Shown one piece after another: positions 53,284 through 61,803 of a DNA stretch of 64,000 bases (positions are counted from its first letter, which is position 1; the number at the start of each line of letters is the position of its first letter). Source of the DNA: Adineta vaga (taxonomy: Eukaryota > Animalia > Rotifera); NCBI GenBank assembly GCA_021613535.1, contig CP075496.1:9734001-9798000 (forward strand). The letters run 5' to 3'. Position numbers and translations under genes: made by a program. A model generated the notes under the pieces. That model was not told the origin of the DNA, did not search any database, and was given only the letters and a program-made list of their open reading frames with translations.

Positions 53284-54033
53284 AGACAAAATTGAATTAT
53301 CAACTTTTTCTTATTGTTATTATTTAGTTAGCTTTACCATAGAATTTTCTTTTTTGTTTTAATTTAAAGACAAAAGAGTTGTTCGTATAGTTTTGTCTCT
53401 TAGATCTTTAAAGGTTGTAATGCTTCAATTTTCTTTTCGTCATTCATTAAAACGACCTTGGTAGTACTTTTTGTTTCTCTTTCATATGCTTGCTAAATGC
53501 AAGGATGTTGTTCTGTAATAAAACAAATACGATACGAATGATAAAGTTAGCAGTAAATATTATTGCTATAAAGAACGATAGGACTGTGCCTTCAATTTGT
53601 CACAGTTGTAAAGACATCGTTATATTTTGAAATAATTTTATCGCAAAGAGAGAGAGAGAAAGAACAAGCAAATGATTTGATTGGAGTGCATGACAAAACC
53701 ATCGATATTTAACGAAAGAGAACGAACGGGTACGTAAAATTTTTAGATATTTTGTAATGAAAATGACTTTTTTTTCGACACAATAAACAACAAAATATTG
53801 TCAAAGGTAATTTCGAAAAAACACAAAATGATATTGAATAAAATACATTCTAGGAATTCAATTAGCATGTAAAAAAACACATTCTTTCGACTTTCTTCTA
53901 ACATGAATTTGAATCTATTGTGTTATTCTATTGAAAGAAAATTGTTCAGATCTTTTCATCAAGAGAAAAAAGAAATCGAAGAATTTATGATTGAAACTAT
54001 ACAAAATACTTGACTAAAAAGAAATTGATTCAA

Positions 54034-55117
54034 TTAAACAATTGTATTGGTCACTGGAAACGTTCCAAAAGCAAATGAGCGTGGTCTACGACGAGATCGT
54101 TTACGCTGTGAATCTTGATGATAATAAAGTGTAGCTAAACTTCGCATTGGTGCAGAATAATCCATACGAGGTACAATTTGTGTTATAGCCCATGAATAAT
54201 CGGGATAATTAACAAGACGTTCATCTAATAAATATTGATATGGAAGATAACAATAACCATAATTACCCTAGAAAAAAAAATTATTGAATTCCACGTAAAT
54301 CTTATGAAAATGTTGTTCGTACCCAATCACGTCCCCATGAATTTCGTGCAATAAAACATTCGGAATCATCATCATATCCAACAAGAAGTATAGCATGTGA
54401 AGTTAGATAAGCTATTTCATAGTCATATGGATCAGGTATATTAATATAACCACCATTAGCATTAGCTTCACCATTAATTTCATATTTCATTTTTACAGCA
54501 ACAACAGCTGGTATTTGATTAGCTAGACATGTTTTAATTGCATGAATATTAATTGGTATACGAAGCGGTATAATCGTATGTTGTCTTGCTGCTGCATATA
54601 CTTCAGGTGGTGGTTTTCTATTTAATAAACGTCGATCATATGGCCAAAGTTCTTCTCTACATAAACCATATTTACGCATACCAACAACGACATTTTTTCT
54701 TGATGCACCTGCATCTTCAACCGAACGAGTTCTTTGATCTATAATCTGTCCGTTAAAATAGATAAATAATCGAGAAAGTGCAGTGTATACACCAGTTCGA
54801 CGTTTTAGTAAATATTCACATGCACTAGCAAAAGCACTAGATACACTAAAATCAAGAAGGAGAAAAAAATCTAAACGTTACGTTACATATGAATACATTG
54901 ACAAGGTAACGTACCAAGTATTCATATAATCTTGATTTACGATAGGAGACATCCATCGTCGTAAATCAACTTGACGTGGTAATATGCCATAAGCGGCATT
55001 ATCTGTAAGCATCGTACTACGAAACATTTCAGCACTATCAAATGAACGATAAGCGCTCGACATGTATCCATTTGTAGTGTTGAACATATAGTTACTTGTC
55101 AACATTTCTTTTCTCAA
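54034..55117 (-). CDS. Papain-family (C1A) cysteine peptidase of bacterial/xylellain-like type, with introns
   Basis: LPRQVDLR…PIVNQ…TC (Cys codon split by the ~54847-54914 intron), LSRLFIY, GLC.E..WPY, HAILLVGYDD, RNSWG..WG..GY.YLPY; no I29 prodomain seen; 5' end uncertain. Confidence 0.85.
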
Positions 55118-55669
55118 CTAATATTAGATGTGTACAAAATTAGAAGAAGAAAGAATCATTCAATATTCGTTGTCGTCAATACTGATCAACTATAGGAAGA
55201 GACAGACCAATATACGTTTGTATTTATTACCATGACTAATTGAGTGCAGCAAGTAGGAGTTGTTCGTTTCGGTTGACATTTTTATTTTTATATACATATA
55301 AGAGAGAAAAATGTCTAAATATTTACTATATTACCTTTAAGTCTACGCCAAATGACTACTATTTTTCACACACAATTCGAACATATGTTTATTATTGACA
55401 ATTAATTAAGTAGAGAGTGTTGAGTCAAGGTTATGAATAATATTTTCAATGTGTTGAAAGTCACGAAAGTTTTTAGAACAAGAAGTGTTCTAGTGCTATG
55501 ATATTCGTACATAATAATGATAATAATTATAGTTATCAAAAACGAATCATCTATTCGTAAGATAGAAGGTCGCAAAGAACTAGAACTAGAATCATTTCTT
55601 TGTTTATTTTTCTGCTTTTATCCATCAGAAAAAATGACTGTTACAGTGTAAAATTTGATTTTTCTTTAA

Positions 55670-56152: not shown

Positions 56153-56521
56153 TCAAATAATGCAAATACAAATGATGAATACTATACACATTCCGTTTTG
56201 TCCTTATATATAGATTGTTTATTTGACATATTTGATTTCATTGAAAATACATTGTCGAACGTTCCTTGTAGTTTCAAATCATCATATGATATGAGAGAAA
56301 GTAATCCAAAACAAATAATTTCCATCAAAAGAAATGGAGGAAGTACTCAGACACTTGATTTTCTTGAGGAATAACCGATAACAGAAAATGTTTTGTAGAT
56401 TACAAGATTTACCTTCAAAACTGGAATACATATAGTCTTTCATGTCATTTGACAAGTTAGCAAATATGATCCAATACACTTCCATGCGTCTCATATTTCA
56501 TATCGTATACTTTTCTTTCAG

Positions 56522-57350
56522 TTTGAAGTGAAAATATACGCTGGTCCAGATACTCTCTGTACTGTAACTCAACAAAACTTTCAAATGCAACGATAAAAAT
56601 TGTAAAGATATTTGATGAATATATTGACTGTTTCACATAGATTTTATTCTTGTTTTAGTTTTAAAAGTAGAAAAAATGAATGGATTGATGACAATCGATT
56701 ATGAAGAAGCAGATGATCTTAGTATCATAATTAGTTCTTATGTAAGTGTTACAGAAAACTGATTTTGAATGAATGACTTGATCGTTTTCTAACTGAAATA
56801 TGACTATATAGGTAGTTAAAGGTAAAAATGTTTATGATATTACTATTTCACAAACATTTTCTTTAATTCGTCAATCCTCTGGTCTTTGCGTTTTAATAAA
56901 CAAGCTGAATGTCAATTGGAAAATAGAATTAATCCATTTGGTAAACGAAAACGAAATTTAGATAGTCAAGTAGCTACACAATGGTGTGATGCATATATGA
57001 AACAAGCACATGCAATTGCAAAAGAAGAATTCGGAAATATAGGTAGTAAATTAGCAGAACATGCTCGTATGGCGTGTATCGATGATGTCTCTGTAACAGG
57101 TGATCGATCGGTTAGTTTCATTCGTTTTTAATGAATGTATATATCATTGTTTAATATTTAGTGGGCACAAAGTTCAATTAATTTTGTTACTATGGATGCT
57201 CTGAGAGTGAGTCGATTAGAAGGTAAAGCACGTCAGATGAAATTACGAACATTGTCATCACTGTGGCAAAAGCAAAATTATGTGCTGAAGAAATTATTGG
57301 TAAAGATCGATATCCTTCTACAAATGCTACTGAAATTTATCAATAAATCT
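56522..57350 (+). pseudogene. Fragments of a Cys-containing extracellular protein gene (resembles the C-terminal region of vWD-type proteins)
   Basis: Exon-like pieces …ATQWCDAY…MACIDDVSVTGDRS|WAQSS…, with stops and frame changes and no intact 5' part. Confidence 0.35.
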
Positions 57351-57522
57351 TATGAAATAATTTTGAACGACAATTCAAATCGTATAAAAAAAACTTTCGA
57401 ATTTCGATGATAAAATAAGATTTGTTCGAAATAAAACTAAAATGATAATTATTATTATCGATAGATATCTCTTTTCTAGAAGAAAATAGTTTTTAATCAT
57501 TGATTTATTCTGTAAAATATAT

Positions 57523-58046
57523 TTAACAATTTCTCCATCCATTAAGTCCAAGACGTGTACGAATATCTCGTAATTGTCCACCATTAATTTCTCTGACTTG
57601 AGCATGGAGATGAACACCAGTCGATTGACCAGATGTACCCATTAAACCAATATATTGTGCACGAGCAACTCTTTGACCAACTGATACAGTAATAGAATTT
57701 GCAGTCATATGACAATAGAGTACTTTGACAGTATTATGTTGAATCTCAACATAATTACCACAAGCACCACAACGACTTTGATCAAAATCACCAGCACCAT
57801 TACAAACACCAATAACTGTTCCATCCCAAATAGTATATAAATTAACTCGTTTAGCACCGAAAGAACCAATATCTACAGCTTGATGACCAGAATGAAATCC
57901 TTGTGTAACACAAGCTTCACCATATGAAACAGGTGGAAAATGTTCTTGGCCATGAACTAAAATTCTTTCGAATAGATAATATTTCAAGAATAACAAAACA
58001 AACCTATGCTAACAATAACAGCAGCAATGATGAGTACTGGATACAT
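57523..58046 (-). CDS. Secreted M23-family (lysostaphin/LytM-like) zinc metallopeptidase, 2 exons
   Basis: Exons 58004-58046 and 57523-57956 (47-nt GT-AG intron) give 158 aa: MYPVLIIAAVIVSIVHG-QEH…; HQAVD (HxxxD), GNYVEIQH, YCHM, VGQRV, IGLMGTSGQSTGVHLH (HxH). Confidence 0.92.
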
Positions 58047-58593
58047 GATTTAATTCGAAGAAGAAACGAATAAGCGTAATGAAAAACTTCTCTTTTCGAG
58101 TCATGAAGGAAGAGCTATAGTTATATTACGAAAATAGAGGTATGCTGTGAGAAAAATACCATCTGTTACTTGATAATATATCGATCATCGAGTTCTCATT
58201 CTAAACTAGATATTTTCGTCATATTTTATATGGACTTTATTCCTTTTAACATTACATATATGATTAAAAATAATTCGAGTCCATGAGAAATAAAAGCAGA
58301 TTTTTAAATCGAATGATTCTATCACGTCTGTAAGAAAATACAATGGTAAACATATACGTATACATTCCGACATCTGTTTAACCATGACTTGCGTAATATT
58401 CCATAGAGAAGAAGAGTAGCATTAGGTCATATCGATGGATGATCTATCATTCTGTCTTGTATATTCTTCTATTCAGACTGAAGATAATAAATGTTATTTT
58501 CTTTCTGTTCTCTTCGTTCATACATGATCTAACTGAACATAAGAGAGCCATTTGAAGAAACAGTTGTCTTAGTATATCGAACATTTTACAACG

Positions 58594-58884
58594 ATGCATT
58601 TACTCATTGGAATCATTGGTTTTAGCTTATTTTTTGTTACTCTCAATGGTCTAAATGAAACATGTCTTCATATTCAAAGCAAAGGAAAACATTGTACAAT
58701 GGAAAAAGAATCGATTCTTGAACGTATGTTCATTCCACCAACAACAACAGAAAATCAAGAATGCGAGAGATCATGCATTCAATCAGGTTACAATGGTGGT
58801 GGATATTGTTCAATTTCGGAAAATTGCTTTCGTTTTTGTTCTTGTTATCATTTAGTAGTTAGTTCTTCCTTTAAAAATGAATAA
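58594..58884 (+). CDS. Secreted 8-Cys macin/defensin-like (CS-alpha-beta) peptide
   Basis: Signal peptide (~19 aa); Cys at 24, 34, 57, 61, 72, 78, 82, 84 with CxxxC, GGYC and CxCY motifs. Confidence 0.7.
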   Translation: MHLLIGIIGFSLFFVTLNGLNETCLHIQSKGKHCTMEKESILERMFIPPTTTENQECERSCIQSGYNGGGYCSISENCFRFCSCYHLVVSSSFKNE

Positions 58885-59507
58885 ACATGATTAATTCTTG
58901 ATGCAAATGTGTATTCTCAAGATTATCTCAGGAATAATACCTACTTAAAACAAATGAAATGAATTTGTTACGGAGAAATATTTTTAGACAAATATCTTTT
59001 TGACATCGCATTTCTAATATTAAACTCATCATATACTAATTCTATGTGAATATGTCGAACGTCATTAATGTTCTCATTTAGATAGTAACAGTTTCGATCT
59101 ATTTCACTTCGTCAGATTTGAAATTTTTCTCATTGTTATTAATTATGTTATTGTAAGTAAACATTATACTAAATCAAAGTATTATCTTAAAATAGAAGTC
59201 AGTAGTTCTATTTTGAACTTAAAATACACATTTTCATAGTGAGATACATCTAATTCGACAGGTAGGTTAAAATAGAAATCAACGTACATAGAATTTATTT
59301 ATAAGTATTATTATGTATAATGTAAAATGTCAGCGGGTATGTCAAAAGATTTCTAATTAGCCTTTCACATCCTTTAGCTAATGAAAAAGGAAATGTAATC
59401 ACGAAATTTATCTTCTAGTAAAGCTCACTTTAGTCTCGACAGTTTTCCTTTTCATTTCAAAAAGAAAAACTGAGTCGCGAATACTTATAAATAAATATAA
59501 AATTCTA

Positions 59508-60500
59508 ATGAATTCTAGCAGCACATCAACCATTCGAATTACAACGACAACAATAACAAGTTCACTTACTGTAATTCAAAATCTAATCACACAATACACA
59601 TTTCTCGTGATATTTATTCTTGGTAATGTCAGTAATCTTACAAATATCTTAGTTTTTCTTCAAAAAGCTTTACGAACAAATGCTTGTTCATGGTATTTTG
59701 CATTGGTATCACTTGGTCATCTAATATTTCTTTATTTCGGTTGTTTAACACGAATTCTCACTACATGGTTAGGCTATGATTTAAGTCGCACATCAATTAT
59801 CTATTGTCGTATTCGAATTTATTTTCTTACAATTAGTTTATTAACAGCACGACTTTTCTTATGTTTTATTTCCATTGATCGATGGATGGTTACATCACGT
59901 GAAAATTCTATTCGTCAATTAAGTTCCATGAAAATTGTACGTTGGTTTATTTTCATCGGAATCAGTTTTTGTATTCTCTTTAGTATTAATTTTCCAATTT
60001 GGTATCGTATTGAAGGAACACGAGGATGTATTGGTGCACCAGATACATTCTATCCGTTATTTTATACGATTTATAATTTAGTTATTACAATTGGTCCATT
60101 CGTAATCATGATTTTCTTCAGTTTATTAGTTCTTAATAATCTTCGACGAAGACACCGACGACAAATTATAGGAACAACACAAACAGCGGTGCCAATCGTA
60201 ACTACTCAACAATATTATCGAAAAGAAATGCAATTCATAAAATTATCCTTAATTCAAGTATTTCTCTATGTTCTTTGTAATACATTCTATGCTTACAATG
60301 CAACATATGCTTTCATAACACAATCATTTGTAAAAACACCAGAACAAGTTATTCTAGATTCATTTTTGAGTACAATTGGATTAAATATTAGTTATTTTTA
60401 TATGGCAATCACATTCTTTTTATATACGGTTGTGTCAAGTACATTTCGAAAAGAATGTCTATTAACAATTAAACGAATTCTACAATGCAAATTTCAATAA
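59508..60500 (+). CDS. Rhodopsin-like 7TM GPCR
   Basis: 330 aa; GN..N in TM1, NAC, SIDRW, FFLY..S.TFRKE. Confidence 0.87.
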   Translation: MNSSSTSTIRITTTTITSSLTVIQNLITQYTFLVIFILGNVSNLTNILVFLQKALRTNACSWYFALVSLGHLIFLYFGCLTRILTTWLGYDLSRTSIIYCRIRIYFLTISLLTARLFLCFISIDRWMVTSRENSIRQLSSMKIVRWFIFIGISFCILFSINFPIWYRIEGTRGCIGAPDTFYPLFYTIYNLVITIGPFVIMIFFSLLVLNNLRRRHRRQIIGTTQTAVPIVTTQQYYRKEMQFIKLSLIQVFLYVLCNTFYAYNATYAFITQSFVKTPEQVILDSFLSTIGLNISYFYMAITFFLYTVVSSTFRKECLLTIKRILQCKFQ

Positions 60501-60759
60501 ACAGACATCAAAAATGATATTCATTGAATGTTGTAATTTGTAAAAATTGTTGTGTAAAACTTAATAAAGAAGATGAAAGTCATATATCTATTGCTAACGA
60601 TTGCATGTTTAAATAGATTAAAGAACTTTTCATTATCAAATTTGACAAAAATAACGAGTAATTTGAAAACCTCTAATTGTTCTGATGATAATCTAAATAA
60701 AAGATGTATATAGTCGAAAAATCATTATTAAACTCGTTGACATTTCCTTTAAATATAGA

Positions 60760-61803
60760 ATGAACAATACAACTGAAAATATTCTTTCTGAAAAATATAA
60801 ATTTTTAACTCAACAATTTACAAAATATCTTGGTATTCCATTATATACTCTTTGTTTCTATGGAACAATAATGAATATGATTATTTTTACTCAACATACT
60901 TATTTTCATCGATCTGGTTCTCTCTATCTTTTAATTGCTTCATTTTGTGATTGTATCTATTTACATATTGCACCATTATCAAATATTCTTCAATATGGTT
61001 TTCATTATGATTGGACAATTAATTCAATTGAATTTTGTAAACTAAAATCTTGTTTCGTTTTTGTTATCACAGGTATATCAGCAACATTAACAACATTAGC
61101 CAATGTTAATCAATATATATTAAGTTCGAAAAGAAATAAACGATGGAAATATACTTCAAAACGAATAACAATTCGATGGATTGCTTTTACAATCATTACT
61201 TTATTGATTCTTTCTATTCCAATTCTTTTCTGTTATACACGACATGATCATTCATCGAATAATGAACAATTGATTTGTTCAAATTCATTGAATAATCAAA
61301 TTTGCTTTTGGTTACAAATATTTTATGTTTGTTTATTGAATGGTTTTATTCATCCATTTCTTATGCTTTTCTTTGGATTATGTACATTTAGAAATATTCA
61401 TCATCTAAAACAAAGATCGATAGTCAAATCTAAACGTATTCGACAAGTTAATTATCAAATATCATCGATGTTAGTTCTGCAATCAATTAAATCAAGTTTT
61501 GCATCAATTCCTTATGCAATATTTAATTCATATGTTTTAATAACGATTAAAAAACAGAAATCATTATTTTATCAAGCAAAAGAAAATATTGTTAGTCAAT
61601 GTGTTTATTTTCTGTTTTGGAGTAATTATACAAGTTTTTTTATTTATTTATATTCATCAAATATTTTCAAACATCATTGGGAAGAAATTATGAAGAAAGT
61701 CATCTGTTGTTTGTTTGGAAGAAGACAACAACGACAACAATCAAATTATCAAATTCAAATGAAAAGGATGACTATTGTACGATCGATTGGTAATCCAAAT
61801 TAA
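60760..61803 (+). CDS. Rhodopsin-like 7TM GPCR (DRY motif replaced by NQY)
   Basis: 347 aa; 7 hydrophobic segments, FCKLK before TM3, FFIYLYSS.IF. Confidence 0.8.
   Translation: MNNTTENILSEKYKFLTQQFTKYLGIPLYTLCFYGTIMNMIIFTQHTYFHRSGSLYLLIASFCDCIYLHIAPLSNILQYGFHYDWTINSIEFCKLKSCFVFVITGISATLTTLANVNQYILSSKRNKRWKYTSKRITIRWIAFTIITLLILSIPILFCYTRHDHSSNNEQLICSNSLNNQICFWLQIFYVCLLNGFIHPFLMLFFGLCTFRNIHHLKQRSIVKSKRIRQVNYQISSMLVLQSIKSSFASIPYAIFNSYVLITIKKQKSLFYQAKENIVSQCVYFLFWSNYTSFFIYLYSSNIFKHHWEEIMKKVICCLFGRRQQRQQSNYQIQMKRMTIVRSIGNPN

Follow-up and report, generated by a model that had tools for sequence, protein, structure and literature searches.

A head-to-head pair of genes for a secreted M23 peptidase and a defensin-like peptide in the bdelloid rotifer Adineta vaga

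When a gene for a bacterial-type, wall-cutting enzyme stands head to head with a gene for a defensin-like peptide in an animal genome, do the two form an antibacterial system or are they simply neighbours? The question was raised by a stretch of 64 kb from the bdelloid rotifer Adineta vaga (G000:C4:9734001-9798000, from an assembly of 100.8 Mb in six contigs; 'the window' refers to this whole stretch), for which a first-pass annotation had proposed that a bidirectional promoter may co-express a horizontally acquired M23 peptidase with a membrane-active peptide. The locus was best explained as two distinct genes, both expressed, whose adjacency is limited to the genus Adineta, rather than as a conserved two-part module; a probability of roughly 0.65 was given to this reading. 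The first gene encodes a minimal secreted M23 zinc endopeptidase; a bdelloid ancestor most likely acquired it from bacteria, after which an exon for a signal peptide and an intron were added and the gene was kept under strong purifying selection. The second encodes a secreted peptide of eight cysteines, probably N-glycosylated and near-neutral to acidic, in which an extension of about 30 residues with two cysteines stands before a core of the cysteine-stabilised alpha-beta type (CS-alpha-beta); its family was found here in bdelloids alone. Each gene has its own 5' end, and some shared regulation is possible.

Structure and transcription of the two genes

The features of the locus are listed below by position in the window (UTR, untranslated region; CDS, coding sequence; X1, X2, X3 and X6 denote RNA-type sequencing runs).

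57487-57522, minus strand: 3' UTR of the M23 gene; RNA-type contigs end at 57487 (X1) and 57489 (X6)
57523-57956, minus strand: M23 exon 2, 143 codons plus stop, with the entire catalytic domain (Pfam, alignment, AlphaFold2 (AF2) model and Foldseek)
57957-58003, minus strand: M23 intron of 47 nucleotides (nt), GT..AG, phase 1; contigs of X2, X3 and X6 join 57956 to 58004
58004-58046, minus strand: coding part of M23 exon 1, the hydrophobic leader MYPVLIIAAVIVSI and then a split codon
58047-58098, minus strand: 5' UTR of the M23 gene; 5' ends at about 58095-58098 (contig ends of X2 and X3, cap-switch oligonucleotide of X6 at 58095), with one contig extending to 58149
58099-58424, no strand: interval of about 330 bp between the two mapped 5' ends, with mirrored CGTAATAT elements
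58425-58593, plus strand: 5' UTR of the peptide gene; contigs start at 58419-58429, with the cap-switch oligonucleotide of X6 just before 58429
58594-58884, plus strand: peptide CDS of 96 amino acids, intronless (open reading frame (ORF), alignment A1, AF2 model and fold matches)
58885-58907, plus strand: 3' UTR and poly(A) site of the peptide gene; an X1 contig ends at 58907, then AAAAAAAA
59508-60500, plus strand: rhodopsin-type G-protein-coupled receptor (GPCR), intronless, a separate gene downstream of the peptide (Pfam PF00001, E = 6.8e-8)

The distance between the two start codons (ATGs at 58046 and 58594) was exactly 547 bases, so that the earlier description of two small, divergently oriented genes for secreted proteins was confirmed in its coordinates; both genes were also found to be transcribed. 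Contigs from four RNA-type runs of the same organism were mapped to 56500-60700, where they covered the M23 and peptide genes and nothing else; their depth was unsuited to comparing expression levels. The labelling of these runs as RNA was only a guess, and was confirmed by the removal of the intron, the cap-switch oligonucleotide and the poly(A) run. Positions 57957-58003 were skipped exactly in contigs of three runs. This intron separates the exon for the signal peptide from the exon for the domain: exon 1 (ATG at 58046-58044) comprises a 14-residue hydrophobic leader plus the first base of the split codon, and the product of the one-intron gene is a predicted secreted protein of 158 amino acids. 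Read by eye, both products begin with a hydrophobic leader of 17-19 residues.

The cap-switch sequence found at both 5' ends came from a 2013 library; on the M23 side it was present at 58095 as its reverse complement, in the loose end of the X6 contig. At the 3' ends, a minus-strand AATAAA lay just upstream of the M23 transcript ends (57487-57489), while an AATAAA overlapped the stop codon of the peptide gene. Both genes are real, are spliced or polyadenylated, and have separate transcripts whose 5' ends lie about 330 bp from each other. Base composition was about 30% G+C across the whole window. A scan for sigma-70 promoters and terminators gave nothing, which is irrelevant to a eukaryote.

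Conservation and regulation of the pairing

The head-to-head pair was present in A. vaga, A. ricciae and A. steineri. The flanks of the pair, comprising a C1 peptidase, two unnamed genes and two GPCRs, were collinear in Adineta too; therefore, the adjacency kept within this genus is background synteny and says little. Elsewhere the two genes were found apart. In Rotaria socialis, the M23 gene had other neighbours and there was no peptide gene within 6 kb; likewise, the peptide gene of Rotaria sp. Silwood1 had other neighbours (genes for an IBR-domain protein and for a kinase; no GPCR adjoined it directly) and no M23 gene within 6 kb. A metagenomic bdelloid contig of 570 kb (L025) carried the genes of the window's left flank, the peptide gene and the GPCR in the same order, but no M23 gene, and 3.6 kb of other genes (SBP56-like and ART-like ORFs) stood in its place. 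The M23 paralogue of A. vaga (C3:17057346, I4U23_016331), which is 73% identical and has an intron at the identical position, had no peptide gene adjoining, and within 20 kb on either side only the M23 gene itself matched the window. Comparison of this paralogue as an ohnologue was abandoned, since without shared synteny it offers no independent view of an ancestral pair.

Linkage of the pair in relatives, which the first-pass annotation had expected of a functional module, was thus observed in three Adineta species, with their flanks syntenic as well, and was missing from Rotaria, the collinear contig and the C3 paralogue. The idea of a module is weakened by this result, while within Adineta a module may still exist. 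Nor is the arrangement itself unusual. Roughly one neighbouring gene pair in four is divergent, and in the annotated Adineta loci examined gaps of 0.4-1.5 kb were the norm and divergent neighbours at such distances were common; in a genome as compact as this one, head-to-head genes about 0.5 kb apart are nothing special, and the arrangement is no more than chance gives.

Several observations weigh against reading the locus as two independent genes, and most of them favour a co-regulated antibacterial or bacterivory unit, in which one bidirectional promoter region would serve both genes and the products would act jointly on bacteria. The 5' ends, at about 58095-58098 (-) and 58419-58429 (+), are merely 330 bp or so apart, well within the spacing of less than 1 kb that applies to bidirectional promoters, and both transcripts were present in all four RNA-type libraries. 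The identical 8-mer CGTAATAT occurs just twice in the 64-kb window, both times in this intergenic region (58123-58130 (-) and 58392-58399 (+)), in mirrored positions about 25-35 nt upstream of each 5' end. In A. steineri, where one assembly has two tandem copies of the pair and the others have one, a tandem duplication of about 4.8 kb (L007 4135-11134) copied the M23 and peptide genes together. Moreover, a wall hydrolase and a defensin-fold gene would seldom be adjacent by chance, because both classes make up a small fraction of the genes in the genome. A further point concerns the first gene alone: its bacterial origin is drawn from the distribution of matches, and not from a taxon-labelled tree. 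These points leave a shared regulatory unit in Adineta possible.

Against such a unit stand the loss of linkage outside Adineta, the equal conservation of the flanks and the ordinary spacing, as described above, together with the sequence of the intergenic region itself. The M23-side copy of CGTAATAT was not conserved in A. ricciae or A. steineri, the peptide-side copy was kept in A. ricciae only, and the remaining intergenic sequence was poorly conserved among Adineta species. The two genes also evolve at very different rates, with a dN/dS (omega) between species of 0.07-0.13 for M23 and 0.2-0.47 for the peptide, and the peptide is not cationic. On balance, joint regulation and joint action on bacteria were considered unlikely. 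A narrower version, confined to Adineta, would see the anciently acquired M23 enzyme and the defensin-fold peptide as the two components of one effector system against bacteria or fungi, induced together through a short divergent control region that holds the mirrored CGTAATAT elements, and copied whole in A. steineri; this was thought quite improbable. The proposed pairing is weakly supported and resembles ordinary gene order within one genus.

The M23 peptidase and its origin

Database searches with the first gene used exon 2 alone, and the joined coding sequence was translated for length and charge only. Exon 2 matched Pfam PF01551 (Peptidase_M23) with a score of 56.7 bits (E = 2.9e-15), where the cut-off is 28.7, and contains the HxxxD motif, the catalytic histidine, the HxH motif and six cysteines. 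Five residues (H24, D28, H82, H115 and H117 in exon-2 numbering) were invariant in alignment A3, which comprised bdelloid sequences and metagenomic relatives; the zinc ligands (HxxxD and the second histidine of HxH) and two catalytic histidines were retained in all Adineta and Rotaria orthologues. The AF2 model was confident (predicted local distance difference test (pLDDT) 94.6; predicted template-modelling score (pTM) 0.89). When it was compared with solved structures by Foldseek, 66 PDB matches were obtained at E <= 0.001; the 50 listed were all of LytM/M23 fold and mostly M23 peptidases, including ShyA, EnpA, StM23, lysostaphin and LytM catalytic domains (E of about 1e-7 to 1e-6). With a Pfam score above threshold, an intact active site and a LytM-type fold in a confident model, the earlier identification as an M23 peptidase was upheld.

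The mature enzyme has about 141 residues, six cysteines and a pI of about 8.3, and the protein consists of a predicted signal peptide and a bare catalytic domain, with neither a targeting nor an occluding domain. It has in common with lysostaphin/LytM-type enzymes (MEROPS M23, PF01551; StM23 9gy1, ShyA, EnpA, LytM) the fold, the zinc ligands and the catalytic histidines, and is the size of their isolated catalytic domain; the closest solved structure by sequence, 9gy1, is an M23 hydrolase of 144 residues. Unlike those bacterial enzymes, it is encoded by an animal, with a signal-peptide exon and an intron, and it is without SH3b, LysM or an occluding pro-region. Further differences are its six cysteines, its bdelloid-specific N-terminus (PPV.Y) and C-terminus (GLNGW..C), and an identity to any solved M23 enzyme of at most 32%. 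Such an enzyme would be expected to cleave bacterial peptidoglycan extracellularly, at its peptide stems or cross-bridges, either in the digestion of eaten bacteria or in defence; the data do not discriminate between these roles.

Full-length orthologues of 158 residues were identified in A. ricciae (94% identity), Rotaria magnacalcarata (91%), R. socialis (89%) and R. sordida (76%), besides others. A more distant relative from Didymodactylos carnosus (43-45% identity) has the family-specific N- and C-terminal motifs and the cysteines. All named sources of the family were bdelloids (Adineta, Rotaria, Didymodactylos). In an exhaustive search, the next relatives were metagenomic sequences of at most 49% identity, often long multidomain proteins, of which the few with names were annotated as murein DD-endopeptidase MepM/NlpD; phage lysins and tape-measure proteins matched at 39% identity or less. 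That the next relatives are metagenomic, and the named ones bacterial murein endopeptidases, fits an old acquisition from bacteria. Most likely, then, judging from these sequences, M23 was acquired from bacteria before the sampled bdelloid families diverged, and the leader exon and intron were gained later. Horizontal acquisition, as put forward in the first-pass annotation, is accordingly favoured insofar as the family is confined to bdelloids among named sources and its named outside relatives are annotated as bacterial. The sequences indicate strong purifying selection on the gene (omega of about 0.1).

The M23 sequence might instead be a contaminant from bacteria, or a recent insertion without function, and so not be a domesticated animal gene. 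Nothing favours this beyond the domain's affinity to bacterial proteins. The gene sits between animal genes in a chromosome-scale contig and its G+C content resembles that of its surroundings; a spliceosomal intron is removed from it in the RNA contigs, and its leader exon is of eukaryote type; orthologues occur in several bdelloid genera, with omega of about 0.1. The spliced transcripts and the syntenic orthologues already refute this reading, and its probability is negligible.

No animals are better known for retaining foreign genes than bdelloid rotifers. The domestication of bacterial wall hydrolases by other eukaryotes is established, as in the dae amidases of ticks and hydrolases of dust mites. 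Further examples are provided by GH25 lysozymes (PMC4241558) and by the NlpC/P60 enzymes of Trichomonas (bioRxiv 10.1101/320382). Like tick dae, GH25 and NlpC/P60, the rotifer enzyme would be a bacterial-type protein that is retained, expressed and, by prediction, secreted by a eukaryote that meets bacteria, and it too shows eukaryotic gene features and purifying selection. It differs from those cases in belonging to the M23 family, and in being known here from sequence and models. For bdelloids, foreign transcripts that degrade peptidoglycan have received a general mention, with the suggestion that they may help digestion (PMC4632278). The literature, searched in full text, contained no paper specific to the bdelloid M23 family or to a bdelloid defensin-fold peptide; a preprint on a tardigrade 'M23-like' protein was set aside, as it is about another family. 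Both genes are additions to classes already known, namely domesticated wall hydrolases and defensin-fold peptides. As what appears to be a clean, expressed and deeply conserved wall-cutting enzyme of bacterial type, cut down to its catalytic domain and provided with a secretion leader, M23 is a good candidate for learning what foreign genes do in a bacteria-eating animal.

Three minor observations concern hydrolases. One of the M23 copies in the A. steineri duplication has an extra partial repeat of its 3' half, giving a called product of 196 amino acids. A second family of small, secreted M23 proteins was found in A. vaga; these are intronless, of about 146 amino acids and with HxxxD and HxH intact, and they occur in two copies, at C3:4839903 (+) and C1:11867074 (-) (L005 1303-1743 (+) and L006 1447-1884 (-) within the fetched loci). 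They are about 25% identical to the enzyme in the window and were probably acquired separately. Finally, a papain-family C1 cysteine peptidase (54028-55324 (-)) lies 2.2 kb from M23 and is syntenic in A. steineri and A. ricciae; should M23 be digestive, this would be another secreted hydrolase nearby.

The cysteine-rich peptide

The second gene encodes a leader of about 19 residues and a peptide with eight cysteines (C24, C34, C57, C61, C72, C78, C82 and C84), all of which were conserved across the 10 sequences of alignment A1. Five of them belong to a core framework of the form CxxxC...GxC...CxC (C57xxxC61, G-x-C72 and C82-x-C84), with C24, C34 and C78 in addition. The AF2 model contained a helix (51-63) and two strands (69-74 and 80-85) at pLDDT 71-89; C57xxxC61 fell on the helix, G-x-C72 on the first strand and C82-x-C84 on the second, while residues 16-45 were modelled without confidence. 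The Foldseek matches listed for this model were almost all CS-alpha-beta proteins, i.e., drosomycin, long-chain scorpion toxins, and defensins of plants, fungi and insects. Each match was weak (E of 0.4-3), because the core has only about 35 residues. When a profile was compared with PDB sequences, a plant defensin-like protein, gamma-thionins and drosomycin were recovered at E of 0.07-1.3.

No Pfam family exceeded its threshold for the window peptide; PF24552 (Defensin-like), PF00304 (Gamma-thionin) and PF07333 (SLR1-BP) matched 9 or 10 of the 10 members, all below their gathering scores, with best E values of 0.0035-0.015. Macins (hydramacin, theromacin, neuromacin, mytimacin) have eight or more cysteines around a CS-alpha-beta core, with the extra cysteines N-terminal and in the hairpin. 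No Pfam Macin match was obtained for any of the 10 members at E up to 10, nor was a macin present among the PDB sequence matches (E up to 10) or the 50 fold matches listed. The rotifer peptide therefore differs from macins in having no sequence or fold match to them and in not being cationic, and a macin identity was rejected. Of the original label, 'macin/defensin-like', the second half was retained on the evidence of cysteines, model and fold matches, and the model supports assignment of the peptide to the CS-alpha-beta (cis-defensin) fold class.

Drosomycin, the plant defensins and gamma-thionins, and the long-chain scorpion toxins share with the peptide a CxxxC on the helix, GxC and CxC on the strands, and eight cysteines. 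Although these four-disulfide peptides were its best fold and profile matches, all sequence matches being below family thresholds, the rotifer peptide is unlike them in several respects: an N-terminal extension of about 30 residues that carries the first two cysteines, an extra cysteine three residues before CxC, a mostly acidic or neutral charge, N-glycosylation sequons, and a distribution so far limited to bdelloids.

A profile search placed 43 proteins in the peptide family, and all named sources were Adineta or Rotaria. Two subfamilies were distinguished, type A (92-96 amino acids, including the window peptide) and type B (84 amino acids), of which A. vaga has one copy each; its type-B gene is at C4:8591193, and a peptide paralogue is listed as I4U23_019760, on the contig to which the window also belongs. 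Type A has conserved N-x-S/T sequons. Mature peptides mostly had a net charge of -5 to 0 and a pI of 5.4-7.2; two of 18 members were basic, and the homologue from Rotaria sp. Silwood1 was exceptional at +7. The claim that the peptide is membrane-active fared badly against these values: a classic cationic attack on membranes appears doubtful, because the peptides are mostly anionic or neutral and their N-glycosylation sequons are conserved. The family is undescribed in the literature searched, and its acidic charge and probable glycosylation make it atypical.

A defence role is nonetheless possible, and the peptide is of interest with regard to bacteria and fungi alike. Bdelloids are known to be killed by fungi (bioRxiv 10.1101/2021.09.04.458992), and the best matches of the peptide include the antifungal drosomycin and plant defensins; by analogy, an antifungal role would be at least as plausible as an antibacterial one.

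Alternatively, the peptide might not be antimicrobial at all, and might instead be a secreted CS-alpha-beta signal or inhibitor, comparable with the SCR/LURE peptides of plants, gamma-thionin enzyme inhibitors or channel-binding toxins; it could perhaps be tied to the GPCR downstream, with M23 as an unrelated neighbour. The acidic or neutral charge and the conserved sequons suit this interpretation, as do the sub-threshold Pfam matches, which include SLR1-BP and gamma-thionin. In every Adineta locus (A. vaga, A. ricciae and A. steineri) and in contig L025, the first GPCR is next to the peptide gene, so this adjacency is more widely conserved than that with M23. However, the tie between peptide and receptor is putative and comes from gene order; bdelloid genomes are rich in orphan GPCRs, of which two stand side by side here, and the adjacency may be due to chance. 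In Rotaria sp. Silwood1, moreover, no GPCR directly adjoins the peptide gene, and the strongly cationic charge of that homologue (+7) is like that of antimicrobial defensins. A signalling or inhibitory function was thus regarded as rather improbable, and two separate genes, with a possible defence role for the peptide, remained the preferred reading.

The type-B gene at C4:8.59 Mb was considered as part of a second pair of peptide and hydrolase, since it lies head to head with a bacterial-looking CHAP-domain ORF (C4:8592103-8592687 (+); L002 2402-2986). This candidate was rejected because the CHAP ORF is not a wall hydrolase. It encodes a leaderless, stand-alone protein of 194 amino acids whose closest match is the amidase domain at the N-terminus of trypanothione synthetase (PDB 2vob, E = 7e-41), with no synthetase part in the ORF; by its sequence, it belongs to cytosolic thiol metabolism. 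The arrangement was found in A. vaga and A. steineri and was absent in Rotaria sp. Silwood2, and it does not support the idea that such peptides are generally paired with hydrolases.

Downstream of the peptide in the window are two tandem, intronless rhodopsin-type GPCR genes (59508-60500 and 60760-61803 (+)). In public gene models of A. ricciae (L010 3713-5409) and A. steineri (P0180), the peptide ORF and the GPCR that follows it are merged into one gene; as the A. vaga peptide transcript ends in poly(A) at 58907, these fused models are probably annotation errors.

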